Below are positions 49,095-64,000 of a stretch of 64,000 bases of DNA, piece after piece. The DNA lies in the NCBI GenBank assembly GCA_002104905.1, contig MCFE01000067.1:124001-188000 (forward strand). The letters are read 5' to 3'. The notes under the pieces are model-generated. The model saw only the letters and a program-made list of their open reading frames with translations. It was not told where the DNA came from and did not search any database. Made by a program: the position numbers and the translations under genes. The stretch's first letter is position 1. The number at the start of each line of letters is the position of its first letter. The stretch is from Basidiobolus meristosporus CBS 931.73. Lineage: Eukaryota; Fungi; Basidiobolomycota.

Positions 49095-50861
49095 ATGAAA
49101 TCCTTGCTTTCTTTGTTTGTGATTGCACTGGCAGCAACATCCATCGAGGGGGCTCCGAAGTACAGCTATGACCAATGTGGCTCTCGATACGGCACCTGTG
49201 CACCAGGCTTGTGCTGCAGTAAATGGGGCTCCTGCGGTTCCACCTCGGAATACTGCTCTACTGGTTGCCAAACTAAATTCGGCAGCTGTAGTGGTAGTGC
49301 TTCAAAACCAACCACCACAGTCCCAACTCCGCTGAGACAGCTCAATGAACAATGCGGTTCCGGGTTCGGTTCATGCGCATCAGGATTATGCTGCAGTGAA
49401 TGGGGCTGGTGCGGCTACTCCTCCGACCACTGCACTGGAGGCTGCCAAAAACAGTTTGGTACTTGCAGTGCCAGTAGCACAACGGCCGCTACTCTCCCCA
49501 CCACTACGAAGTCCCCCACCCCAACACCATTGAAGCAACTTAATGAGCAATGTGGAGCCAATTTAGGTACTTGTGCACCAGGCTTGTGTTGTAGTGAATG
49601 GGGTTGGTGCGGCTACTCCTCCGACCACTGCACTGGAGGCTGCCAAAAACAATTTGGCACTTGCAGTACTGGCAGCACAATGACCACCACTTCCACTTTC
49701 ATCACGAACTCCCTTTCTCCAACTCCATTGAGGCAGCTAAATGAACAGTGCGGCGCCAGTGATGGTACCTGCGCGCCAGGATTATGTTGCAGTGAATGGG
49801 GATGGTGTGGATACTCATCTGATCATTGTACTGGAGGCTGTCAGAAGCTTTTTGGTACTTGTAGTGAGGGAGCAACCACCATCATCTCCTCAACAACCTC
49901 TGATACAAGCTCTAGCACTATTCAACCCACTTCTACCGCCACCTCCACTACAGCCACCCCGACTCCGACTGGACTAAGATACCTCGATGAACAGTGTGGT
50001 TCCAAATACGGCTCCTGTGCACCTGGTTTGTGCTGTGGCCAAACTGGTTACTGTGGCTACACCTCAGGACACTGCTCTGCAGGCTGCCAAAAGGATTTTG
50101 GAATTTGCGACAATAAAATAGAGGCAGAGGTGATTACCGGATGTAAAGCACCCGGAACTTTCGCAGTTACCTACGATGATGGACCAAGTGTTCTGACTTC
50201 AGGGCTGTTGGATTATCTGGACGAAGTGAAAGTGAAGGCCACCTTCTTTGTTAATGGGAACAACAGAAAGAATGGTGACACTGGAAACCCAATGTTAACC
50301 ATCTACGAGCTCGCTGATGTTGTCCGACGCGCCTACAACTCCGGACATCAAATCTGTTCTCACACCTGGGCTCACACTGACATTATTACCGTGAACGAGG
50401 AAGAGGTCGTCTATGAAATGACCAGACTGAATCACGCCTTCAGTAAAATCCTCGGCAAGGTTCCCACTTGCATGAGACCCCCCTATGGCGATACCGATGG
50501 GCCATCACGCAAGATTCTTTACAAAATGGGCTACACTGTTGTCAGCTGGAATGTGGATCCAGTTGATTGGAATCCGGTGAATTCCATTGATGAGATGTAC
50601 CAAGAGTATATTGATCAGACTGGATCTACCAGCACTAAAGTTGGCAAATTCATCTCCCTGAACCATGATGTGTGGAATACTACTGCTGACTTCAGGCCCG
50701 AGAGCTATCCCAAGACCATTCCACTTGCTAAGCGATCTATCGATTATTTGTTGGAAAGAGGTTGGAAGGTAGTTAACCTTGCCGAGTGCTTGCAAAGCCC
50801 GCCGCTATACCGTGATCCCAACCCTTCGGATAGTAAATGCGGCACAAAAGCCTGTGTTTGA
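49095..50861 (+). CDS. Secreted chitin deacetylase (CE4/NodB) with five hevein-type CBM18 domains
   Basis: Signal peptide; 5x C..GxCxxGxCCSxWGWCG...C..GCQ..FG.C separated by Thr/Ser/Pro linkers; TYDDGP, HTWAH, RPPYG and LNHD catalytic motifs. Confidence 0.92.
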   Translation: MKSLLSLFVIALAATSIEGAPKYSYDQCGSRYGTCAPGLCCSKWGSCGSTSEYCSTGCQTKFGSCSGSASKPTTTVPTPLRQLNEQCGSGFGSCASGLCCSEWGWCGYSSDHCTGGCQKQFGTCSASSTTAATLPTTTKSPTPTPLKQLNEQCGANLGTCAPGLCCSEWGWCGYSSDHCTGGCQKQFGTCSTGSTMTTTSTFITNSLSPTPLRQLNEQCGASDGTCAPGLCCSEWGWCGYSSDHCTGGCQKLFGTCSEGATTIISSTTSDTSSSTIQPTSTATSTTATPTPTGLRYLDEQCGSKYGSCAPGLCCGQTGYCGYTSGHCSAGCQKDFGICDNKIEAEVITGCKAPGTFAVTYDDGPSVLTSGLLDYLDEVKVKATFFVNGNNRKNGDTGNPMLTIYELADVVRRAYNSGHQICSHTWAHTDIITVNEEEVVYEMTRLNHAFSKILGKVPTCMRPPYGDTDGPSRKILYKMGYTVVSWNVDPVDWNPVNSIDEMYQEYIDQTGSTSTKVGKFISLNHDVWNTTADFRPESYPKTIPLAKRSIDYLLERGWKVVNLAECLQSPPLYRDPNPSDSKCGTKACV

Positions 50862-51491
50862 ACGATTGATTTAATGCCCTTCATAGCCGCATGACATATA
50901 TGTCTAATAAAAAGTAAGTCGAGAAACGGTCAATCGAGTCGTACTGGATATGGATCAGTTCAAAGTTTGATGATTAACAATAGCTATCAGCAATCTTAAA
51001 GTCTCCGCTTGGGGACACCAATTTATCATTACGTACAAGTTCCTTATTCAGTATTGGCTTACTGTCCTGTGATCAATGCCTGCTGTATCACTTCGGGGCT
51101 AACCCGATTGATCCGATCTGGATGTGCTGAGATCGATCAAGTCAATACCAACATACTGAATATAGATTCGTTCGAGATTTCTGAAAAGAGCATACCTCAT
51201 ACTTTCCTATACAGTATGAATTCGGAAAATTTAACTGACTATTTTGCCCTTTTCAGCAGAACGCATATAATATGTATAGGTGTAGTAAGAGCCATCTTGC
51301 TGGAACTATGCTACGATATCGCACTGAATTTTCACTGCTACACCACGAAGTGTACAGTGTAAAACACACTCCTTATAAATTCCAGGTGGTAATAATCCAG
51401 TATCTCCGGAGTTTACAGCAGATTACATTCGCAGCTCGTTTATACCTATTTACATTGTGCATTCCAAAATGTATCATCAATTGTGCTATTT

Positions 51492-51651
51492 GTTTCTACC
51501 ACTCTTACTGCTTCTAACCAAACTTAAACTTTATTTGATTGGTTGATTGGTATTTATACCTTATTGTGATTTGTCTTGATATGCTTTTCGTTGGATACTA
51601 AGTTGTCTTTGTACGCGTTGATGCCACTTAACATTGGGTGACTCCTTACTC
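51492..51651. repeat. ~165-bp dispersed repeat, copy 2
   Basis: Aligns by eye to 33549-33715. Confidence 0.75.
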
Positions 51652-51762
51652 TTTAACATTAAGTTGCTACAAGGTTAAGGGGCCATGTAGTAAGAAATAA
51701 CAATTATGGACAGTGGCATATTTGCCCAGGGGGAAGAAGACTTTTATAAAAAGGGTTAGGGG

Positions 51763-51918
51763 TGTAGTAAGAATTTGTAATTCCACCAAAATATTCACCT
51801 AACTTGGTCACTTAGATCATTACCTCCAAATCCTAGAGAATACTGACCAAAATCCTAGTTGCGATTTACTTAGAATATTTACCCAGAGCATGAAAATTAG
51901 ATAAGTTGCTCAAACTGC
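51763..51918 (+). repeat. 5' half of a copia LTR, truncated and capped by TTAGGG
   Basis: Aligns to the first ~155 nt of the reverse complement of 3394-3725, then breaks at CAAACTGC|TTAGGGTTAGGG. Confidence 0.85.
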
Positions 51919-52442
51919 TTAGGGTTAGGGGGGAGACAGTCACCAACATGTGAAATCTTTATTTCAGTTGAAACAAAGAAGCCAGCACTACTGTTGTAGC
52001 TTTGATACAAGAGTGTGTAGCTGAGGGGAATTTGTAGGTAAGTTAATAAGAAGTGATGATAGCTCTTCAGTGCTCAAGACACTGTTCAGTGGGAAGGGGG
52101 GTAGCAAGAGAGGTAAGAATGACTTGTGAATAACATTAATGAGGGGAATGTGATAAGGATTGATATTCATCATAAAGGGAGTGTGCTGCTGCAGATATTG
52201 CTGCCAAAGGTCTGTCAAGTACTTCAGGTAGGCCAGCTTGGGTTTTTCTGACTACAGAATAAATTGAGCAAACTTCTTGACTTCAGGATCTCCAGGTATA
52301 GTTCTCCAGCAGGAGTCAGATGTAGTGTGGTGTGTTCTCTTCCATGCCTTAATCAGTGGGTTGTTGCAGTGGTGAAGTCTGAGATATAATCTGGTTCTAA
52401 GGTAGAGAAGTCTGATCTTATAGGGCATAAACCCAAAAGCAC
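51919..52442 (-). mobile_element. Telomere-junction LINE family A, copy 1 (3' 0.5 kb)
   Basis: Near-identical to the 3' ends of copies at 54806 and 57943; begins with (TTAGGG)2GGG. Confidence 0.85.
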
Positions 52443-54805
52443 TGTTGTGCATCAACATTTAAAACTTAGCCAATTTTACTCCGTTTGAAAATCTAGTACC
52501 CTAACTGATTTTCCCTAACCCAAACATAACAAATCCAGTTACAGTTTATTTTATCCCACCTCAGAATCTATTTTTAGCTATCACACCTGATCTATTTTCA
52601 AATGGTCATTACGTTATCAACCTATCTGCCAAGCCTTCACAGGTGATTAGTCATCTGAGATCTATCCAACCACTGTGCAGTTGCCAAGACATCAGTTGAT
52701 TGATGATGTAATTTTCATTTATCTTATGCACCTATGAACACCCAAATTGATTTCAATCAATCCAGTCCCTTGGCACTTACTAATTCAACTTGATCAGAAA
52801 AGTATAAATAAAGTTTACTGAACCTTTTGGTTTAGTGTGTGTCTCAACAAAGTTAAGATTCTGTCTCAGCAAAAATAAGTAATCCAACAATTCAATTCTA
52901 GTTTCTATCCAAGCCTAGCATATCTAGCACTCCTAAAGAACACCAAGCCTAGCCTGCCTGGCAAACAAATATCATTGTCTTTATAGCCAACCCAGCTATA
53001 TCCAAGACCAATATCAGATCAGAATCTTTCTGCCAATATTTCTGCCACTCTCTGACAATTCTAAGATTCTGCACTTAATTGTCCCTTTGGTTCAGTTAAA
53101 CCATTCAAGAGTTTTATCACACTTTCTCTTGGATACAACATTTTTTTTGTTGAAATCCATTACATTCAGCCTGATTAGAAGATGTCCTCAGCAGCAAGCA
53201 ATCCAAACCTTTCCATGTTGGAAGAAGCCAGAAGAAATCAGGAAGAACTTACTGAACAGCTTGAAAACATCATGCTTGAAAGAAATACCATGATGCTTGA
53301 GCACTCAAAGCTTGCCAAAACAAGATCTGATATTCACCGTAGGATGAACTCCTTGAAGTTATATCCAGTTACCAAGATGAAATTGGAATAATTAAGGAAG
53401 CACTGGAGAATATTGCCATAGTAATTGACAGCATTGAAAATCTGCCAAGCCTTGCTCTGCGTCAGCCACCAAGAAGTCATGCCTGTGAATCCTCCAGATC
53501 TACATCTCCTTCTAGACCTGCCCCGGTGGTTGTCCCAAAATCCTTGCCTGTTTATGCTGAAGGCACCAATGCCATCAAGAATCCAACTGAGCTTCTTTGC
53601 AAGTTTAGTCATATCTTAGCTGCACACCAGCTAGACCCTGACACCAACTGGGCTAGACTTCTGCCTCTCTGTCTCACAATGCAAGATGCTGACTGGGTTG
53701 AAGTGAACATTCCTTCCAATAGTACGTGGAAAATTGCCCAAAACCTCTTTTGCAGCCATTTTGAAGATCCTCTCAAGAAAGCACATCTGAACTGCAACTT
53801 ATAGAAAACTAAAATGCAAAAAGGTGAATCTGTGCAACACTTCTGTGATAGATTCCAAAGACAAATGAGATTAGCTGGAGTTAGTGATGATAATCCATTG
53901 CTTACTGCTCATTTTCTTTCAAACTTTTTACACCAGCTACAGAGCAATATTGCTATTGTCAAAGCATGCAGCCCTGCATGTACCTATGACCAGATCTCAG
54001 AGATATGTACACTGGCAATCATCTTGACTGCAGCTGTTAGCCAGACTTCAGGCAACTCAACCCAAGATCCCACAACAGCCGGAAAAGAGACCAGTCATGT
54101 GACCAAGAAGCAGTCAACCGCTACCAAGCACTGTGAGCTTCATGGAAAATGCTATCATTCTACCAGTGAATGCAAAGGCATCACCAAGCAGTCAAACAAG
54201 TCAGGAAACACCTCAGAAAAGCAGCAAAACACCAAAACTGATAATCCATATGCTGATGACAAGTGCTTTAAATGTGGAAATATGGGACATAGATCACCTG
54301 CCTGTCCTGAGAAGAACTCCACACCATCAGCCAAAATACCCAGATCCTTGATGATCATTCAGCCAATGATACAATGGGGTATGAAGAAGTATATGAAGAA
54401 CTTACAGTTCAAGATTATCACAACCTCTTTGAGTTTCCGGCTAAAATTGCAACTGTTCAACAAAAGAAGCAACCAACCACACAGCTCAAAGCCATAGAAG
54501 TGCCACTCACCCTCAATGGCCAATCATATGTAGCACTACTGGATACTGGATCATCCAACTCTATTGTATCACCCAATGTAGTCAGAGAACTCAATTTGGA
54601 GATAGAAAAACAACAAGGAAAAATCGTTCTTGCAGCTAAGGATCACTCAGCCCCAAGAATTGGCATTACCAACCCAATCAACATACACTGTGGCTCAGTA
54701 ACCATAATCCATCAGATGGAAGTTATTGACATACCAGATGGACCTCAGGTAGTCATTGGTCTGGAAACCTTCACCAAACTTGGCTTTCACATAGGTGGAC
54801 TACCC
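52443..54805 (+). mobile_element. 5' half of a Ty3/gypsy element (putative LTR 52443-52849, gag, protease), truncated by TAGGGTTAGGG
   Basis: TGTTG...CAACA putative LTR; gag fragments 53182-54497 with CFKCGNMGHRSPAC knuckle; protease LLDTGSSNS (54374-54808); in-frame stops; no RT. Confidence 0.8.
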
Positions 54806-56858
54806 TAGGGTTAGGGGGAGACAGTCTCCAACAGGTGAAATCTTTATATCAGTTGAAACAAAGAAGCCAGCGCTACTGTTGTAGCTTTGATACAAGAGTG
54901 TGTAGCTGAGGGGAATTTGTAGGTAAGTTTACAGGAAGTGATGATAGTTCTTCAGTGCTCAAGACACTGTTCAGTGGGAAGGGGGGTAGCAAGAGAGGTA
55001 AGAATGACTTGTGAACAGCATTAATGAGGGGAATGTGATAAGGATTGATATTCATCATAAAGGGAGTGTGCTGCTTCAGATATTGCTGCCAAAGGTCTGT
55101 TAAGTACTTCAGGTAGGCCAGCTTGGGTTTTTCTGACTGCACAATAAATTCAGCAAACTTCTTGACTTCAGGATCTCCAAGTATAGTTCTCCAGCAGGAG
55201 CCAGGTGTTGTGTGGTGTGTTCTCTTCCAGGCCTTAATCAGTGGGTTGTTGCAGTGGTGAAGTCTGAGGTATAATCTGGTTCTAAGGTAGAGAAGTCTGA
55301 TCTTATAGGGCATAAACCCAAAAGCACCAAGAATAGCATGTCTGTAGGGGCATTCAGGCAAATGAGGCACCAAGGAGGTAATGCACCATACTGCAAACTT
55401 GTCAAGCTTAGTGCAGTCTCTAGAAGTAAGAGAGAGAAGTGGTAAGCCAAATTCCAGGACAGGGAAGACAAACTGCTCGAGTAGAAGAAGGCAGCTGGGA
55501 GCTGAAGTTGTAGGAGGAGTAACAGCCAGTAGCTTGTGGAGTGCCTGTCTTGCCAGGATAATTCTCTTCTTCAGGTGTGCTCCAGAGTCTAGTCCAGTAG
55601 GAAGGAAAGGAAAGCCAAGATATGTAGCAGAAACCTGAGCAGGTAGAGTGGAGTTCTCCAAGTTGATGGGAGAGCCCAAAGGTACTGTCTTTGCAATGGA
55701 AAGCTGGAGATTATTCTTCTGCAGATACTGGTGGATGGTCTGGGAGTCTTGTTGCACATTGGAGGAGGATATTCTGATGTCATCAGCAAAGAGAGTAACC
55801 AGGCAGTCAGCTGAGAGTCTTGGGAAATCCCTCAGGAAGATGGCAAACAGTATAGGACCAAGCACAGAGCCTTGAACCACTCCATTAGGAACTGAGAACA
55901 CAGCTGATTGCTCACTCGGGTGCAGAATTCTTGCTTGTGGATCCAGAAACAGAGACCTGACAAGGAGGGTGAGAGAGGTCCTGGAGAAGCATTGCAACTT
56001 GGACCAAAGCAGATTTCTGTCAACTGAATCAAAGGCCTTAGTAATATCAAACAGAACAGAGGGATACTTGCACTGGAGAGAGTGATCTTGGCTAAGTATG
56101 ACTGCATATTCCAAGGAGAGGCCAGAAACAAAGCCAAACTGTGCAGGGTGAAACTTGAGGGAGTCAGAGTAGAGCTCCTGAGCAAGCAGAAGCTCAAACA
56201 CCTTTCTGCAGGTGGGCAGCAGAGATATTTGCCTATAGGAGCTAGGATCCAGGTGCTTTCCTTTACCCTTGTACAGTGGCAGAACATTTGCAAAGGACCA
56301 TTCCTCAGGAGTAGAAAGCTGGGCTGAGCATTGCTGAAACAGTGGAAGCAGAAGTGCAGACATGGCCTTGGTACTAGTCTTCAGAAGCTCACAGGACATT
56401 GTGTCCACACCTGGAGCAGTAGAGTTGGGAAGCCTCTTGAGCACATTATGGATTCTCCCTTGATCAAGTGCAAGTGGGATGGGCAGAGTCTTGAAGTCAG
56501 GATGAAAGCCAGGAGTTGAGTACTGCTTTGTAGAGAAGAAGATGTTAGCCAGCTGTTCTGTTGAAGGTAACTTCCTGGAAGAGGGCCTCATTGCCCTGTA
56601 GAGTCTTGATACTGTTCTTGTTATAGAGTTGGAAGATTGCAGAGGCAAAGAACTCATAATATGATCCCAGAGCTGAGTATGTAGAGTGTGGTGAATTGCC
56701 TTGGAGTGGTGTATGGCTGTCAGGAGGAGTTTCTCTGCTTTTGGGTTAGGGAAACTCAGGTAGCATTGTTGCAGGGCTGAAACAATGGATTCCCATTTTC
56801 TTGAGGTAACAGCAGTAGTCTTGCATGGCAGTGAGAGGGAGGCAGAGACCAGAATCAA
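54806..56858 (-). mobile_element. Telomere-junction LINE family A, copy 2 (2.05 kb, 5'-truncated before the endonuclease)
   Basis: Open RT ORF 54873-56858; 3' UTR about 65 nt ending in CCCCCTAACCCTA; no poly(A). Confidence 0.9.
54873..56858 (-). CDS. Non-LTR reverse transcriptase, family A (661 aa, 5'-truncated, open)
   Basis: APGVD, ANVLPLYKGKG, YRQISLLPTCRKVFE, QFGF, FDITKAFDSV, GVVQGSVLGP, FADD. Confidence 0.92.
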   Translation of the reverse strand: MILVSASLSLPCKTTAVTSRKWESIVSALQQCYLSFPNPKAEKLLLTAIHHSKAIHHTLHTQLWDHIMSSLPLQSSNSITRTVSRLYRAMRPSSRKLPSTEQLANIFFSTKQYSTPGFHPDFKTLPIPLALDQGRIHNVLKRLPNSTAPGVDTMSCELLKTSTKAMSALLLPLFQQCSAQLSTPEEWSFANVLPLYKGKGKHLDPSSYRQISLLPTCRKVFELLLAQELYSDSLKFHPAQFGFVSGLSLEYAVILSQDHSLQCKYPSVLFDITKAFDSVDRNLLWSKLQCFSRTSLTLLVRSLFLDPQARILHPSEQSAVFSVPNGVVQGSVLGPILFAIFLRDFPRLSADCLVTLFADDIRISSSNVQQDSQTIHQYLQKNNLQLSIAKTVPLGSPINLENSTLPAQVSATYLGFPFLPTGLDSGAHLKKRIILARQALHKLLAVTPPTTSAPSCLLLLEQFVFPVLEFGLPLLSLTSRDCTKLDKFAVWCITSLVPHLPECPYRHAILGAFGFMPYKIRLLYLRTRLYLRLHHCNNPLIKAWKRTHHTTPGSCWRTILGDPEVKKFAEFIVQSEKPKLAYLKYLTDLWQQYLKQHTPFMMNINPYHIPLINAVHKSFLPLLLPPFPLNSVLSTEELSSLPVNLPTNSPQLHTLVSKLQQ

Positions 56859-57908
56859 TTAGGGTTAGGGTTAGGGGGGATGATAATCACCACAGGGTGA
56901 AATCTTTATTTAAATCATAAATAAAGAAGCCAAATTTGAATATGAATAGTTGAGATGCAGAAAGCCTACAAGATTAACTTGGACTTTGCTGTATCCCAAA
57001 TATCCTCAATATTGAAGTCTAGAGGAGAATGTAGCAAAACTGCTTGTTCACTGTAGTATTTCTTGAGGAAGTTTGTGACTTGAAGGGAAGGAGAGTTTTT
57101 CAACAAGCTGGTAAACCTTTTGAGGAGTTCTTTTTCCAGAGAGACTGGTACAAAGAGTGGAATGTCCAAATGATGTCTGAATATATGCTCTGAGAGCTCC
57201 CAATCCAGCATATTTTTGACTTCTTCTGTAAAATCTTCAACAATATCTTTGTCAAGAATAACTTCCAAGAGATCCCTGGCAATGTACTGAATGTTAATAA
57301 TCTTGGGCATATGAATACCTAGGTCCTTGAGGTAGTTTCTTTGTTCTGAAATTGGGAGATAGCCAGCATTTCTGAAATAGCAAACAGCCCAATTGGCAGT
57401 GGGAGGAGTATCAGGGCTGACAGGGAATCTTCTTCTAGCTTTAGGGTGCACTGGCTTAGGTGACTGTCTTGTTGAAAGGGCAGCTGGCTTTGGATGAGCT
57501 TGAAGTGCTTGGGAGTATGTCTGAGTATAAATGGCAGGAGTTGCTGGTTGCTGACAGTGGTCAGATTGACTGGAAGAAGAGCTGGTTGAGGGGTTGCAAG
57601 GTAAGGAAGAAGCTGAAAGAGAAGTAGAGAGTGCTGGGTGAAGTTCAGAGAGAGTTTTGAAGAGAACCTGAATCTGAGATTTCAACATTGAGTTTTCAGC
57701 TTCAAGAAGCAAAACTCTTTGTTCAAGATAAGAAGTCTGTAAAGAGTGAAAGTTGGGTAAAGACATGGAAGAATTAGATAATAAGAAGAAAGGAGTAGTT
57801 GGGGTGGGAAGGTGGGAAAATAGTTAAGAAGAAAAGAGAGGAAAGATCTGAAATTGAAAATCTCAGAATTTATAGATGGATGGACAAGGGTAGAGGATAG
57901 ATTAATCC
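56859..57908 (-). mobile_element. Family C: ORF1-only telomere-junction element (~1.05 kb)
   Basis: Single ORF with its own ATG and stop; ~90-nt 3' UTR with the shared double hairpin; (TTAGGG)3GGG at the 3' junction; no RT. Confidence 0.8.
56966..57766 (-). CDS. ORF1/Gag-like protein (266 aa), homologous to family B ORF1
   Basis: Coiled coil LEQRVLLLEAEN; TYSQAL; NWAVCYFRN...ISEQRNYLKDLGI...KIINI...LLEVILD aligns with B ORF1 NWSLLYFAN...ISNIRHTFRSLNI...KIVNL...ILEMIVD. Confidence 0.8.
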   Translation of the reverse strand: MSLPNFHSLQTSYLEQRVLLLEAENSMLKSQIQVLFKTLSELHPALSTSLSASSLPCNPSTSSSSSQSDHCQQPATPAIYTQTYSQALQAHPKPAALSTRQSPKPVHPKARRRFPVSPDTPPTANWAVCYFRNAGYLPISEQRNYLKDLGIHMPKIINIQYIARDLLEVILDKDIVEDFTEEVKNMLDWELSEHIFRHHLDIPLFVPVSLEKELLKRFTSLLKNSPSLQVTNFLKKYYSEQAVLLHSPLDFNIEDIWDTAKSKLIL

Positions 57909-57942
57909 AGGGTTAGGGAAAAATAGTTAAGAAGAAAAGAGA

Positions 57943-59109
57943 GGGGGGAGACAGTCACCAACAGGTGAAATCTTTATTTCAGTTGAAACAAAGAAGCCAG
58001 CGCTACTGTTGTAGCTTTGATACAAGAGTGTGTAGCTGAGGGGAATTTGTAGGTAAGCTAATAAGAAGTGATGATAGTTCTTCAGTGCTCAAGACACTGT
58101 TCAGTGGGAAGGGGGGTAGCAAGAGAGGTAAGAATGACTTGTGAACAACATTAATGAGGGGAATGTGATAAGGATTGATATTCATCATAAAGGGAGTGTG
58201 CTGCTGCAGATATTGCTGCCAAAGGTCTGTCAAGTACTTCAGGTAGGCCAGCTTGGGTTTTTCTGACTGCAGAATAAATTCTGCAAACTTCTTGACTTCA
58301 GGATCTCCAAGTATAGTTCTCCAGCAGGAGCCAGGTTTTGTGTGGTGTGTTCTCTTCCAGGCCTTAATCAGTGGGTTGTTGCAGTGGTGAAGTCTGAGAT
58401 ATAATCTGGTTCTAAGGTAGAGAAGTCTGATCTTATAGGGCATAAACCCAAAAGCACCAAGAATAGCATGTCTGTAGGGGCATTCAGGCAAATGAGGCAC
58501 CAAGGAGGTAATGCACCATACTGCAAACTTGTCAAGCTTAGTGCAGTCTCTAGAAGTAAGAGAGAGAAGTGGTAAGCCAAATTCCAGGACAGGGAAGACA
58601 AACTGCTCGAGTAGAAGAAGGCAGCTGGGAGCTGAAGTTGTAGGAGGAGTAACAGCCAGTAGCTTGTGGAGTGCCTGTCTTGCCAGGATAATTCTCTTCT
58701 TCAGGTGTGCTCCAGAGTCTAGTCCAGTAGGAAGGAAAGGAAAGCCAAGATATGTAGCAGAAACCTGAGCAGGTAGAGTGGAGTTCTCTAAGGTGATGGG
58801 AGAGCCCAAAGGTACTGTCTTTGCAATGGAAAGCTGGAGATTATTCTTCTGCAGATACTGGTGGATGGTCTGGGAGTCTTGTTGCACATTGGAGGAGGAT
58901 ATTCTGATGTCATCAGCAAAGAGAGTAGCCAGGCAGTCAGCTGAGAGTCTTGGGAAATCATTCAGGAAGATGGCAAACAGTATAGGACCAAGCACAGAGC
59001 CTTGAACCACTCCATTAGGAACTGAGAACACTGGTGATTGCTCACTTGGGTGCAGAATTCTTGCTTGTGGATCCAGAAACAGGGACCTGACAAGGAGGGT
59101 GAGAGAGGT
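57943..59109 (-). mobile_element. Telomere-junction LINE family A, copy 3 (1.17 kb, truncated inside RT)
   Basis: Nearly identical to copy 2 up to GAGAGAGGT (59109); ORF 58003-59190 reads through into the next junction. Confidence 0.9.
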
Positions 59110-59199
59110 ACTTAGGGGAGGGAAAGTCACCAAGTTGGTGAAATCTTTATTTGAGTTAGGAACTAATCTAGGTACAAATAAAGAAGCCAATTAAGAGGT

Positions 59200-62049
59200 C
59201 TAGAACCTCTCTAATAAGTAATCTAATTTATGTTTTGTTTCATCTCTTATGTTTGTTTCAATAAAGTAAAGTTCATCAGGGGTAAATATAAAATTCAGGG
59301 GTTTTGGGGGAAGTACAAATTGTAGATGTTTCTGATCAATATAATCCAAGACTGGAACCCAGCCTGGGATTAGGTGTAGTAGGAAAGGTGTGTGGACTTG
59401 TAAGTAGCTCTGCCACATAGATCTTAGATGGTCCTGAGCCAGTAGTCTTGGTTTCTCAGCTTTTTGAAGTTTTGAAGCAAGCTCTGTTACTACAGCAGAG
59501 CCAACCAGGGTGTGCCAGCAAGAAGATTTCAGGGAGGAGTTAGATTGAAGCCATTGTTTGATGGAGGGGTTATGTGATTTCTGAAGTTTGACTAGGAAGG
59601 AAGCACGGAGATAGACCATTCGGATTTGGTATGGGTAGAAGCCAAAGGCTCCATTAGTTGCATGGATATAGGGAGATACTGGAAGATAAGGTACCAAGGA
59701 TCTGATACACTGATGGAGAAATTTATCCAGGCGGTGAAGTTCTCTGGAGGTTAGGGGTATAATGTGGAGACCAAACTCAAGTACCGGCAGTACATACTGC
59801 TTCAGAAGTATAGGGATCTTTTGAATTGGAGTGTCTGGAGTGACTACTACCAGAAGCTTTTTGAGAGCCTGTTGAGCAAGACGGATCCTATTATTCAGGT
59901 GGAGCTTTGAGTCAATCCCATGTTGACAAAATGGCAGACCTAGATATATTGCAGTTTGTTGTGGCAGAATGCTAGTGTTCTGTATAGTTGTAGTGCATCC
60001 AATTGGGACTGTCTTGGAAATTGAGAGTGAGAGGTTGTTGGCAGCCAAGTACTTCTCAATGATGGCAGTATCTGCTATGGGATTAGGAGTAGCAATCTTG
60101 ATATCATCCGCATAGAGAGTTAGTAGTGGATAGGGAGAGTCTGGTGAGGGGCCTTTTGGAAATAAAGGAAAGTCATGTAGGAATATCACAAATAGTAAGG
60201 GACCTAGTACAGATCCTTGGACCACTCCATTTGGAACCTCATAAGTCTCTGATGTACAACTTGGATGCAAAATTTTGGCTGAGTTCTCACAAAATAGAGA
60301 ACGTACAAGAAGGGTCATTGGTAGTGTGGTAACTGCTAATAGCTTTCTCCAAAGCAGAGCTCTGTCCACAGAGTCAAAGGCTTTAGTAATGTCAAACAGA
60401 ATGGTTGGCAATGAGAATTGAAGTGAATGATCATGGCTTAGCACTACAGCCATATCCAAGGAGAGTTTGGGCAAGAAGCCAAACTGAGAAGGATGGAATG
60501 GATATAGTTGAGATTGCAAGGATCTTGCAATTATAAGCTCAAAGATTTTCCGGCAGGTTGGCAGGAGTGAAACTGGCCGGTAAGAACCTGGGAGTGAGTG
60601 TTTCCCCTTCCCTTTGTATAAGGGCATTACATTTGCCTGTGACCAGGCCTTTGGGGTAGTCAATTGTTGGGCACAGATAGAGTAGAATGGGAGAAGTAAG
60701 TGACTCATTTTGGAGTAGCACACCCGGAGTAGATCGTAGGTAATCAAGTCATGTCCAGGTGCAGTATTTGCAGGAAGCTTCTTTAAAATTTTCTCCAGAA
60801 GCTTTGCTGAAACCAAAATTGGAGATGTTGGACTGCTAGATATGTTACCAGTATGGTAGAAAGGAGGAGTGGGATGCACGGTTGAATCAAAGAATATAGG
60901 GGCCAGTTTGTCTGGTGATGGTATACTCCTTGCTTGGGGTCTCATGGCTTTATATACTCTTGATATGGACCTTGTGGTGGCATTCATATTTACTAAGGGC
61001 AAGGTATCCATGATATGAGCCCATAATCTAGTGTGCTCAGTGATCTGTAGTGACTTGGAGTAGGAGATTGCGCTTTCCAGGAGGTTCTGTGTTTTTGGGT
61101 TAGGGAAACATAGGTAGCTGGAATTTAAGGCAGAAATGATGGATTTCCATTTAAGTTGGTTTGCAGATGGCTTTTGGTAAGACTTGGTGGGCAGGGCCAG
61201 ACAGCCAGTGATTATGATGAAATGCTGGTAAAATAGCCATAATGCATTTACATCATCACAAATCCATGCAGGTAAGCTGGGAAATGCATATTCTGTAAGC
61301 AAGGATAGGTAGTTGGCAAAGTCCTGTGTCTGTGATACTGAAGCTTTGGCTGGCAGGATTGTAAATGGCTGAAGAAGGGTGCCAATTGGTAGGGTTTTTC
61401 TGGCAGAAATGATAATATGTATTGGCTTGTGATCAGATTTCTCTAGTGAACCACAGCTGATATCCTCTGGAATGCTTGTAACCTGGTGGATGTATTGTAA
61501 GGCAGCTGGAGTAGCTGTTACCCAGTCAACACAACGTTGAGCTTGCTGAGTGTTTACAGTGACCAGATGGTTTTGTCGGAGGAACTTTGTAAAGTGCTCC
61601 TCTCTAGTTCTAAGTCTGGATGAAATAGTGGTGATATTTTCAGGGTGGGGAATATTTATATCTCCCACTACCATACAAGGGATTGATGAGCTGTTAATGA
61701 ATTCTGATGTGGCCAAGAAAATTGCCAGTGTTATGGAGTTAGACAGAGATGGAGGGAGATAGATAATAATGGCTACTATAGTTGGAAGTGTTAGAGCATA
61801 GCAGTAATACTCATAGATGATGGATACATTTGCTGAGGGTGCAAGCTTAGAAGATGAAAGAGCAACAAGTGCCATTGAGTGAGCTGGAAGTCTTGGGTGA
61901 GCAGATGAATATGCATTCAGTCTAGAGGGAAGTTTTGGCAACTTAACATCAATTAGTAGGAGCAAGGAATATTCCTTTTTCAGTAAGTTTTCTAATTCAG
62001 CTACAGTTGGAGTGATGGAGTTGCAATTGAGTAAGAGTATGTTTTGTAG
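59200..62049 (-). CDS. Family B ORF2: AP-endonuclease + reverse transcriptase (frame open from the ORF1 stop; no ATG before the APE motifs)
   Basis: APE: ILLLNCNSI, LLLIDVK, IYLPP, VVGDIN, VDWV, SDHKPI. RT: APGHD, YRPVSLLP, QFGF, FDITKAFDSV, GVVQGSVLGP, YADD. Confidence 0.9.
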   Translation of the reverse strand, partial: LQNILLLNCNSITPTVAELENLLKKEYSLLLLIDVKLPKLPSRLNAYSSAHPRLPAHSMALVALSSSKLAPSANVSIIYEYYCYALTLPTIVAIIIYLPPSLSNSITLAIFLATSEFINSSSIPCMVVGDINIPHPENITTISSRLRTREEHFTKFLRQNHLVTVNTQQAQRCVDWVTATPAALQYIHQVTSIPEDISCGSLEKSDHKPIHIIISARKTLPIGTLLQPFTILPAKASVSQTQDFANYLSLLTEYAFPSLPAWICDDVNALWLFYQHFIIITGCLALPTKSYQKPSANQLKWKSIISALNSSYLCFPNPKTQNLLESAISYSKSLQITEHTRLWAHIMDTLPLVNMNATTRSISRVYKAMRPQARSIPSPDKLAPIFFDSTVHPTPPFYHTGNISSSPTSPILVSAKLLEKILKKLPANTAPGHDLITYDLLRVCYSKMSHLLLPFYSICAQQLTTPKAWSQANVMPLYKGKGKHSLPGSYRPVSLLPTCRKIFELIIARSLQSQLYPFHPSQFGFLPKLSLDMAVVLSHDHSLQFSLPTILFDITKAFDSVDRALLWRKLLAVTTLPMTLLVRSLFCENSAKILHPSCTSETYEVPNGVVQGSVLGPLLFVIFLHDFPLFPKGPSPDSPYPLLTLYADDIKIATPNPIADTAIIEKYLAANNLSLSISKTVPIGCTTTIQNTSILPQQTAIYLGLPFCQHGIDSKLHLNNRIRLAQQALKKLLVVVTPDTPIQKIPILLKQYVLPVLEFGLHIIPLTSRELHRLDKFLHQCIRSLVPYLPVSPYIHATNGAFGFYPYQIRMVYLRASFLVKLQKSHNPSIKQWLQSNSSLKSSCWHTLVGSAVVTELASKLQKAEKPRLLAQDHLRSMWQSYLQVHTPFLLHLIPGWVPVLDYIDQKHLQFVLPPKPLNFIFTPDELYFIETNIRDETKHKLDYLLERF

Positions 62050-63677
62050 TCAGGCAGACTCTGAGGTTGCCTGTTCCTGCTGAAACTCTTGCACTGCCCT
62101 TTGTAAATTTCCAGAATTATTCCACAACTCTTCAAATGGAGCTTGTGTAATGTCTTTCAGGATTCTAATTGCTTCCTCTTTCAAGAAGTAGGCCACATCA
62201 TAGGTTGGAGCCTGTTTCTTAATGGCAGCAAAGAAAGCCATAATTGCCATGTGAGCTGGGGGCTTGTTGAATATTCCTGGCTCAGTGTCCATTGACTCTG
62301 GTGGAATGATTGTGAATTTGGTAGACACCCAGTTTAGATTTTTTGCCAGATACTTAGTCAATGCAGTGGAGAAGTTTCTGTCCACAATCATTTCTAGGAT
62401 CTTTCCTCTTCTCCAAGCTAGGTTAACAATTTTTGAAGTGTCAATATTTAGAGAGCGGAATGTATGTCTGATGTTTGATATAGTAGTCCATGGAACATTG
62501 GCAAAGTATAGCAAGGACCAATTCTGGAGCTGAGGTAAGTTTGCTGGAGGCTTATAGGTAGACTTCCTGGCAGGTTGTGTGGTAGGCTTTAGTGTTTCCA
62601 AGGTAGCAAGTTGTGGTTGAGACTTTTTAGAATTACGTATGACTTTGGAAAGAATTCTGCCAGCAACTGTGTCAGGAATGTTAGTACTTGTTGATGGTGC
62701 AGGGCCTGGCTCCTGGTACTGCTTTTGTAGAATACTTGAGTATGTCTCTTTTTGTTTTCCTTTATCCAAGGTGCTATGCCTTGGAATGGGATTTTGGGGA
62801 ATAGAGACTTCAGGTATCAACTCTGGGGTCTGGTGATTGTCCAACACTGTTGCTTGAGCTTCCAGCTTTTCCTCTAAGATTTGAACTCTCTGCTTAAGCT
62901 CATCATTTGACGCTATAAGTGTGCATTGTTTGGAGCCAGGTCAGGTGTTGAGTTATGAAGGCAGGTTGAGCAGCGTTCTAACTCCTTTGTTTGGTCATCC
63001 AACTTTTCTTCTAAGGTTTGAACCCTCAATTTGAGTGCACCATTTGAGGTTAGAAGCTCCAAGTTATCAGCCTGCAACTTCTTTAGATCCCTAAATATCT
63101 CAAATATCTGTGCCTGCAAGTCTTTAGCAGTGATATTTCTGATGGGTACTATTTCCTCTAGGAGTTCTTCTTGAGCCAGGTGAGCATTGGGACTTGAGCA
63201 CTCTACTGAAGGAGTTGCTGGAATTTCCTCAATGTCTGACAAAACTCCTTCACTTGCAGCATCAGTTGTATGATTATCCTGAGTAGCAGCAACAACCTCA
63301 AGTTCACAAGGACCAGTTGAAGTAAAACATTTCTTGGGTGGGACTATCTCAAGAGGCTTGGGTGGGACTTTTGCTTTGAATGGTGAGGTACTAGGATCAA
63401 GAATTGGGACTGGGACAGAAGCTATGGTGTCTATTTCAGCAGCAGTTGCTGTAGAGCTACTGGGGCTCTGACTGGCTGGTTTTTTGGTCTTTGCCTTCAC
63501 TCCTGCTACCAACTGGTCAAGACCACAAATCTTTGTACAGGCCTTGCATTGGACCTGCGTAACCTTATTCTTGCCAGCACAGCCATTGAGCTTCCATTTG
63601 CCTCTGACACCACAGGCAGTGCAGTCAAGTTTTGAATGCCATCTTCTGAAGAGAGTCAGATCCTCTTTTTCCTCACT
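62050..63677 (-). CDS. Family B ORF1 (CxxC..CxxC zinc ribbon, duplicated coiled coil, conserved C-terminal domain); 1-nt frameshift near 62915-62925; 5'-truncated
   Basis: ORFs 62913-63512 and 62050-62847 join by a -1 shift (NAH|LIASNDELKQRVQILEE); frame stays open upstream to the junction and encodes CTACG...CKACTKIC. Confidence 0.75.
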
Positions 63678-64000
63678 GGGTTAGGGGAGGGAAAGTCACC
63701 AAGTTGGTGAAATCTTTATTTGAGTTAAGAACTAATCTAAGTACAAGTAAAGAAGCCAATTCAGAGGTCTAGAACCTCTCTAATAAGTAATCTAATTTAT
63801 GTTTTGTTTCATCTCTAATGTTTGTTTCAATAAAGTAAAGCTCATCAGGGGTAAATATAAAATTCAGGGGTTTTGGGGGGAGTACAAATTGTAGATGTTT
63901 CTGATCAATATAATCCAAGACTGGAACCCAGCCTGGGATTAGGTGCAGTAGGAAAGGTGTATGGACTTGTAAGTAGCTCTGCCACATAGATCTTAGATGG
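63678..64000 (-). mobile_element. Telomere-junction LINE family B, copy 2 (3' end; runs off the window)
   Basis: High identity to 59112-59435; begins GGGTTAGGGG. Confidence 0.9.

Follow-up and report, generated by a model that had tools for sequence, protein, structure and literature searches.

Telomere-facing stacks of non-LTR retroelements in the fungus Basidiobolus meristosporus and their probable addition to chromosome ends alongside telomerase

The best-known cases of retrotransposons that extend telomeres come from Drosophila, in which telomerase has been lost, and it is an open question how the addition of retroelements to chromosome ends originates while telomerase is still present. 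This question is raised by one contig of the fungus Basidiobolus meristosporus CBS 931.73 (MCFE01000067.1, here C1001). The stretch analysed, referred to as the window, comprises 64,000 nt (C1001:124001-188000; window coordinates are used below), and the contig terminates at 188334, i.e. 334 bases past it. The part of the window from 51919 to 64000 is filled by six minus-strand retroelement copies of three families (A, B and C), as found by repeat search and reading of the sequence. The explanation we favour, with a rough probability of 0.6, is that these copies belong to a consortium of telomere-specific retroelements of the type without long terminal repeats (non-LTR), which adds copies to eroded chromosome ends alongside telomerase.

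In the repeat search of the window, family A is represented by three copies (starting at 51929, 54814 and 57944; mutual likeness 96-97%) and family B by two (59112 and 63681; 97% alike), and the minus-strand orientation of all copies follows from open reading frames (ORFs) with the reverse transcriptase (RT) domain RVT_1 on that strand and from reading of the sequence. A first-pass annotation, made from the letters alone, had described six minus-strand copies joined by TTAGGG repeats or G-runs without poly(A) or target-site duplication (TSD), and this was borne out by the repeat search and by direct reading, which found neither poly(A) nor a TSD at any of the six window junctions. Its further statement that each internal copy is 5'-truncated at a different point holds in so far as the 5' ends differ in every copy, but A1 is interrupted at about 52449 by a fragment of an LTR retrotransposon and not by a telomere seed. 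This fragment (zf-CCHC, 8.8e-5, and Asp_protease_2, 1.5e-9, in Pfam) is itself cut at 54805 by TAGGGTTAGGGGG plus A2, and the rest of the LTR element is absent from the array. Nested insertion was ruled out because no outer half of any cut element (the LTR element, A2, A3 or B1) appears farther along the array. The inner 51.7 kb of the window (1-51700) contains no match to A2, C, B1 or the LTR fragment, and the seven TTAGGGTTAGGG-like matches in the window, compared to 0.18 expected by chance, are all located at or beyond 51919. Over the 520 nt shared by the family A copies, the number of private substitutions falls from proximal to distal (15 in A1, 10 in A2 and three in A3), and between B1 and B2 there are 15 differences in 654 positions.

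The elements have a common 3' module. According to a survey by regular expression, all families end in AAAUAAAGAUU-UCACC-(loop of 3-5 nt)-GGUGA-(5-8 nt)-C-run, and the UCACC/GGUGA hairpin is the predicted minimum-energy structure in seven of seven families or copies. The stem is invariant, with zero compensatory changes, variation being limited to the loop and to the register of what may be a lower stem. A search of Rfam over 51000-64000 at E values up to 1 gave no match to ribozymes or to any further RNA family. Junctions were tabulated from the window, from 20 family A loci and from foreign contigs (36 rows, or 33 without the three contig-terminal ones). Across the 36 rows, the perfect telomeric stretch that precedes the G-run comprises 0-15 letters, reaching a maximum of about four units when imperfect units are included, while the G-run comprises four to ten letters and differs in length even between otherwise similar junctions. 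At least one further telomeric letter precedes the G-run in 34 of these rows; in the other two the G-run stands alone, once after an imperfect TTAGGGTTAC (L008) and once where the contig end cuts the junction (L029). Several junctions lack any TTA. A 3' tail with neither poly(A) nor a TSD is atypical for a long interspersed nuclear element (LINE) of the apurinic/apyrimidinic (AP) endonuclease (APE) type, yet lies within the range of target-specific LINEs.

Table 1. Positions of the retroelement copies, their 3' modules and associated features in the window.
Feature	Position	Strand	Remarks
A1, 3' 520 nt of LINE family A	51919..52449	-	3' junction TTAGGGTTA + G6; 5' side interrupted by LTR-retrotransposon fragment
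LTR-retrotransposon fragment	52450..54805	+	Carries a putative LTR, gag (zf-CCHC) and aspartyl protease; truncated in pol at 54805
A2, family A	54806..56858	-	3' junction TAGGGTTA + G5; 5'-cut between endonuclease and RT regions
C	56859..57942	-	About 1.07-kb element; 3' junction TTAGGGTTAGGGTTA + G6, i.e. (TTAGGG)2TTA + G6; element matched from 56877
A3, family A	57943..59111	-	Joined by G-run alone (G6); 5'-cut inside RT
B1, family B LINE, 4.57 kb	59112..63677	-	3' junction TTA + G4
B2, 3' part of second family B copy	63678..64000	-	3' junction GGGTTA + G4; continues to contig end
3' module of A3 (example)	57943..57979	-	AAAUAAAGAUU-UCACC-loop-GGUGA-spacer-C-run
3' module of C	56874..56911	-	Regular-expression survey
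3' module of B1	59115..59152	-	Regular-expression survey
3' module of B2	63684..63721	-	Regular-expression survey
Telomere-like seed GGGTTAGGGG	51745..51754	+	Reading of the sequence; innermost seed, precedes 140-bp dispersed repeat

Copies of family A elsewhere in the genome were surveyed using its first 400 nt as query, and of 665 candidates the best were scored, giving 41 matches that are 97-100% alike. The position check covered family A only, and all of the 20 copies included in it are situated 1-9 kb from a contig end, on the plus strand at right ends and on the minus strand at left ends, in agreement with the terminal, telomere-facing position that the first-pass annotation had proposed. 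In the same 20 copies the junction consists of a G-run after 0-9 perfect telomeric letters, and the sequence upstream of the junction varies between loci, being either a truncated element or a short interspersed nuclear element (SINE)-like element. Other contigs add further families and a SINE-like element to those of the window, and the earlier notion of a multi-family system is upheld by several families with a single 3' module. The SINE-like element, which is absent from the 64,000-nt window, carries a tRNA-like T-arm (GGTTCAAATCCTGGATCC) and recurs in stacks on five contigs (L006, L009, L020, L021 and L024), where its 5' end (AAGAACAC...) is each time followed by GGTTA, a G-run and the next element; no tRNA was called in its head by ARAGORN on these five contigs. 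Copies reduced to the 3' module alone (37-44 nt), every one with a separate TAA(G) joint, also occur in tandem (L022 3-83; L021 250-287) and represent extreme 5' truncation, as aborted reverse transcription would leave.

The telomeric repeat of the host is TTAGGG, and terminal tracts elsewhere in the assembly measure about 200-240 bp. On contig C1, such a long (TTAGGG)n tract (344886-345093) lies 18 kb beyond a family A copy. Over the whole assembly (1366 contigs) the (TTAGGG)6 pattern was found in 6728 forward windows against 68 reverse ones; this bias, which places the telomere on the right of nearly all contigs, is probably an effect of assembler orientation. A telomeric tract is carried by four of the first 22 contigs, which as a rough extrapolation, not a count, gives a few hundred chromosome ends. 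Judging from a Telomerase_RBD match above the Pfam cut-off on contig C935 and from the long (TTAGGG)n tracts at contig ends, telomerase is evidently present in the host. The elements would therefore act alongside telomerase, and the first-pass suggestion that they might extend chromosome ends instead of it does not stand.

As to coding capacity, the Pfam matches to RVT_1 reach 1.5e-23 in A2 and 1.5e-20 in B1, and the closest solved relative of the RT is human L1 ORF2p (2.5e-11). A2 retains an intact RT ORF of 661 amino acids (aa; 54873-56858) and A3, the least diverged of the A copies, an open ORF of 395 aa, A1 being the most diverged of the three. ORF2 of family A is 49% identical to that of family B, and A2 is 64% identical to its relative P0004. 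In B1, ORF1 is 5'-cut, lacks a start codon and contains one frameshift (near 62916-62940), and ORF2 is open over 949 codons (59203-62049), with the AP endonuclease at about 61345-62049, followed by the RT. The N-terminal 235 residues of ORF2 were not matched in Pfam or PDB sequence searches; an AlphaFold (AF2) model of this N-terminus (predicted local distance difference test, pLDDT, 85) was matched by Foldseek at E values of about 1e-10 to ExoA, ExoIII, APE1 and the endonucleases (EN) of TRAS1 and L1. The endonuclease motifs NCNS, IDVK, YLPPS, GDxN, VDW and SDH are kept in an alignment of B1 with four relatives, and identity in this domain among the families sharing the motifs is 35-56%. RVT_1, the conserved motifs and the matches of the predicted model together identify families A and B, probably autonomous and comprising ORF1, an AP-type endonuclease and RT, as APE-type LINEs, the class to which they had initially been assigned.

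Family C encodes one intact ORF of 266 aa (56966-57766) and no RT. Since this ORF is homologous to B ORF1 in the C-terminal half of the latter (BLASTP, 1e-12, 25% identity over 178 aa), family C is a non-autonomous, Gag-only partner resembling HeT-A. The C-terminal domain of ORF1 has a predicted beta-alpha-beta-beta-alpha-beta core like that of an RNA recognition motif (RRM), with additional helices. An assignment of this domain to the L1 ORF1p type was considered and could not be made firmly, the structure matches being weak and unspecific (E at least 0.016).

Two further observations concern the reading frames. In B1 a single in-frame UGA (62050-62052, in the context UGA-CUA) lies between ORF1 and ORF2, and the same layout, with both ORFs in one frame and split by a single UGA followed by CU(A/C), occurs on two other contigs (L026 2669-2671 and L025 905-907). 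In these three diverged families ORF2 has no start codon of its own, and the arrangement suggests that an ORF1-ORF2 fusion may be produced by stop-codon readthrough. In addition, the sense strand of the element carries, in A as well as in B, a telomere-like CCCTAACCCAAA that encodes the conserved ORF2 peptide FPNPK (56740-56751 and 61094-61105); this may be a coincidence or an internal pairing site.

The architecture recurs in independent sequence data. When Logan contigs from two runs, probably of the source sample, were aligned to 56500-60500, 123 joints were found, each linking one of various positions within A or C to a fixed 3' terminus (56859/56875, 57942/57943 or 59112-59116). Nearly all of those listed have 0-9 letters between the joint partners (such as TAGGG, GGG, TGGG, GTTA or CTTAGGGTT), the exception among them having 26. 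In another study, a run under this species label contains diverged pieces that are 85-95% alike. Among 5.8 billion sequences, ORF2 has only five close protein clusters (44-65% identity), after which identity drops to 24-33%. These five relatives originate from contigs of five other runs, and on their contigs the same module precedes CCCCC-TAACCC(TAA), beyond which stands an element that is truncated or unrelated. The annotation of one ORF1 relative names Basidiobolus ranarum. No Cryptococcus proteins are present among the named ORF2 relatives, few of the matches carrying a name. Other contigs, the short-read joints and the assemblies of other runs thus agree that the junctions are not assembly chimeras, a possibility that the first-pass annotation had itself raised.

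For this anatomy, polarity and terminal location, conserved in other samples and found in a host with telomerase, the following mechanism is proposed. A chromosome end would lose its cap or erode into the outermost element, and its G-rich 3' end, perhaps with a few letters added by telomerase, would pair with the C-run/CCCUAA tail of an element RNA. The RT would hold this RNA, probably by its hairpin. The RNA of every family would end in AAUAAA, the short UCACC/GGUGA hairpin, the C-run and 0-3 CCCUAA units. The paired chromosome 3' end would then prime reverse transcription, and a new copy, often 5'-truncated, would be added distally with its 3' end toward the centromere. The new end would finally regain a long TTAGGG tract through telomerase. 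Over repeated cycles, a one-way stack would result with just 0-4 repeat units per joint. Priming on a free G-strand 3'-OH is inferred from the anatomy of the junctions, as are the source of the short repeats at the joints and any benefit to the host. End addition is favoured because all junction tracts are very short compared to the terminal tracts, because several junctions are devoid of TTA, and because G-runs differ in length, as they should if the pairing of ...GGG-3' with the C-run is variable. The lack of outer halves of the LTR element, A2, A3 and B1, and the outward decrease in private substitutions argue in the same direction.

Several points weigh against end addition. The end of C1001 falls within B2, which extends into it, and no terminal telomeric tract is assembled there. 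The divergence gradient involves three copies only (A1, A2 and A3), older internal copies could exist given that the best 40 of 665 family A candidates were scored, and the RNA 3' end with its telomeric tail is itself deduced from genomic sequence. Recombination between ends surely contributes to the spread of the arrays as well, because composite junctions recur. The main unexplained point is the conserved endonuclease: the retention of AP-endonuclease motifs suggests an enzyme in use, which pure end-priming would not need. TART and TAHRE likewise retain an endonuclease (PMC4700185).

It is this enzyme that lends most weight to the next best alternative, a distinctly less probable one, in which insertion proceeds as in TRAS and SART: the AP endonuclease would nick duplex telomeric repeats in their G-strand, the nicked strand would pair with the CCCUAA tail, and target-primed insertion would take place inside the telomere, the present short tracts being, on this account, the remnant after loss of interstitial repeats. 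The main support for this alternative is the invariance of the endonuclease motifs among diverged families. The predicted fold also matches the TRAS1 endonuclease (template modelling score, TM, 0.72 by target), as it does APE1 and ExoIII, the orientation of the elements is the same as in TRAS1, and the host, like Bombyx, has telomerase and long tracts. However, random nicks in tracts of at least 200 bp should often leave tens of repeats beside the 3' end, whereas a long tract is found at none of the about 33 informative junctions, nor in the short-read joints, and at several junctions the telomeric sequence is limited to the G-run. Neither the divergence gradient nor the cut LTR element is predicted by such insertion.

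A third account, which we consider improbable as the principal explanation, holds that retrotransposition is rare and ancestral and that the arrays are passive, subsequently copied as subtelomeric blocks by break-induced replication or unequal exchange. It draws on the composite unit in which the 5' end of the SINE-like element is followed by GGTTA and then by A, recurring on at least three contigs (L006, L009 and L020), and on the reported expansion and contraction of Cnl1 and MoTeR arrays, possibly by recombination (10.1101/2021.08.11.455996). Recombination does not, however, explain the diversity of joints, of which more than 100 with different cut points leading to a terminus are present in the read contigs, nor the difference in G-run length between otherwise similar junctions, and it fits poorly with the open ORFs in A2, A3, B1 ORF2 and C, with the 97-98% likeness of family A copies, and with the module-alone copies typical of aborted reverse transcription. 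Finally, the possibility that the array is an artefact of assembly, or that ordinary dispersed LINEs have piled up at a contig break rich in repeats and away from any chromosome end, is very hard to uphold and already largely refuted, for although the contig stops inside B2 without a terminal tract and the assembly, in 1366 contigs, has an odd orientation bias of telomeric tracts, the same architecture is present on 20 other contigs, in short-read contigs of the sample and in independent assemblies of five other runs, the expected polarity was found in 20 of 20 checked copies, and the A copy on C1 lies 18 kb inside of a long terminal TTAGGG tract.

The arrangement shares features with several known telomeric systems and coincides with none. 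HeT-A, TART and TAHRE of Drosophila are added to chromosome or broken ends (PMC4700185). The likeness to them lies in the one-way head-to-tail stacks with variable 5' truncation and 3' ends facing the centromere, and in the cooperation of several families, one of them Gag-only and dependent on a partner that encodes RT. However, Drosophila lacks both telomerase and telomeres of short repeats, and poly(A) terminates its elements, whereas here telomerase and TTAGGG tracts coexist with elements that end in a C-run and CCCTAA units. TRAS1 and SART1 (Bombyx, R1 clade) and Tx1-1_ACar (anole), listed as telomeric elements (PMC10088271), are likewise AP-endonuclease LINEs of telomerase-positive hosts, and TRAS1 resembles the elements described here in orientation and, on the predicted model, in endonuclease fold. 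In contrast, these elements have poly(A) and are inserted at a fixed nick site inside long tracts, with repeats on both sides, whereas ours abut, with 0-4 units between them and no poly(A).

Athena and Coprina, the latter occurring in fungi (PMC8557442), also carry reverse-complement telomeric repeats at the 3' end, which are thought to pair with G-rich overhangs, and also form terminal, 5'-truncated copies. Their RT belongs to the Penelope-like element (PLE) class, they are endonuclease-deficient and they contain hammerhead ribozyme motifs, whereas the present elements are APE-LINEs with an ORF1, an RT nearest L1 ORF2p and no ribozyme match in Rfam. The CRE-like group of non-LTR elements is of the restriction-like endonuclease type. 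MoTeR (Magnaporthe) and FoTeR (Fusarium) are such CRE-like elements, whose 3' end is directly adjoined by TAACCC repeats (PMC12857005, PMC7367193), 3-7 units in number (PMC12857005). As fungal, telomere-confined non-LTR elements with truncated copies they resemble the present ones, but they have telomere-like or variable-number tandem repeat (VNTR) 5' regions, belong to Ascomycota and are without described Gag-only or SINE partners. In Cryptococcus neoformans, the LINE Cnl1 builds up large arrays in the subtelomeres of almost all chromosome ends. It also invades naive ends, and the suggestion has been made that it may stand in for telomerase (10.1101/2021.08.11.455996). Compared by description only, it differs in being a single family that inserts into genes too. 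The first-pass annotation had regarded a multi-family system of this kind as possibly new to early-diverging fungi. Telomeric retroelements as such are already known in fungi (MoTeR, FoTeR, Cnl1, Coprina), but no description of any in Basidiobolus or other early-diverging fungi, and no fungal elements with the same 3' architecture, were found in the literature searched.

Some features bordering the array deserve mention. The innermost telomere-like seed, GGGTTAGGGG, is located earlier than 51919 and may mark the true inner edge of the array. Between this seed and TTAGGGTTAGGG lies a 140-bp repeat (51759-51900) with more than 40 copies on other contigs, 85-94% alike and often in close inverted pairs, which is of the kind seen in miniature inverted-repeat transposable elements (MITEs) or terminal inverted repeats. 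Adjoining the array is a chitin deacetylase gene with five chitin-binding modules (49095-50861). It belongs to a subtelomeric gene family, so called because at least six diverged partial copies (78-89% alike) are found elsewhere on the same contig (C1001 8519-35219). Positions 1-763 of contig C200 are 100% identical to 50400-51163 of the window, running leftward from 51163, and C200, which ends about 750 bases short of the array, is either redundant or an alternative contig.

A bolder extension of the end-addition reading, which for the present is doubtful, is that the elements constitute a working second arm of telomere maintenance, their RNAs being reverse-transcribed specifically onto critically short or broken ends. 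It is just as speculative that the hairpin and the C-run/CCCUAA tail are arranged like a telomerase template with its boundary helix.

In this fungus, telomerase and long TTAGGG tracts are combined with multi-family retroelements at many ends, comprising autonomous LINEs, a Gag-only partner and a SINE-like rider, all of which terminate in the repeat of the telomere itself. Features so far separate are joined here, i.e. the stacking consortium of HeT-A/TART, the endonuclease LINE type of TRAS/SART and the telomere-complementary tail of Athena/Coprina. This makes Basidiobolus a tractable case in which to ask if short or broken ends are healed by retroelements, and what mutual recognition takes place between an RT, an RNA 3' structure and a chromosome end. 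The system is also relevant to genome architecture in Basidiobolus-like fungi, whose chromosome ends are apparently very numerous. Should the elements indeed act as a second maintenance arm, they would help the fungus to keep possibly hundreds of chromosome ends, and the system would represent a living intermediate between telomerase-only telomeres and the retrotransposon telomeres of the Drosophila type.

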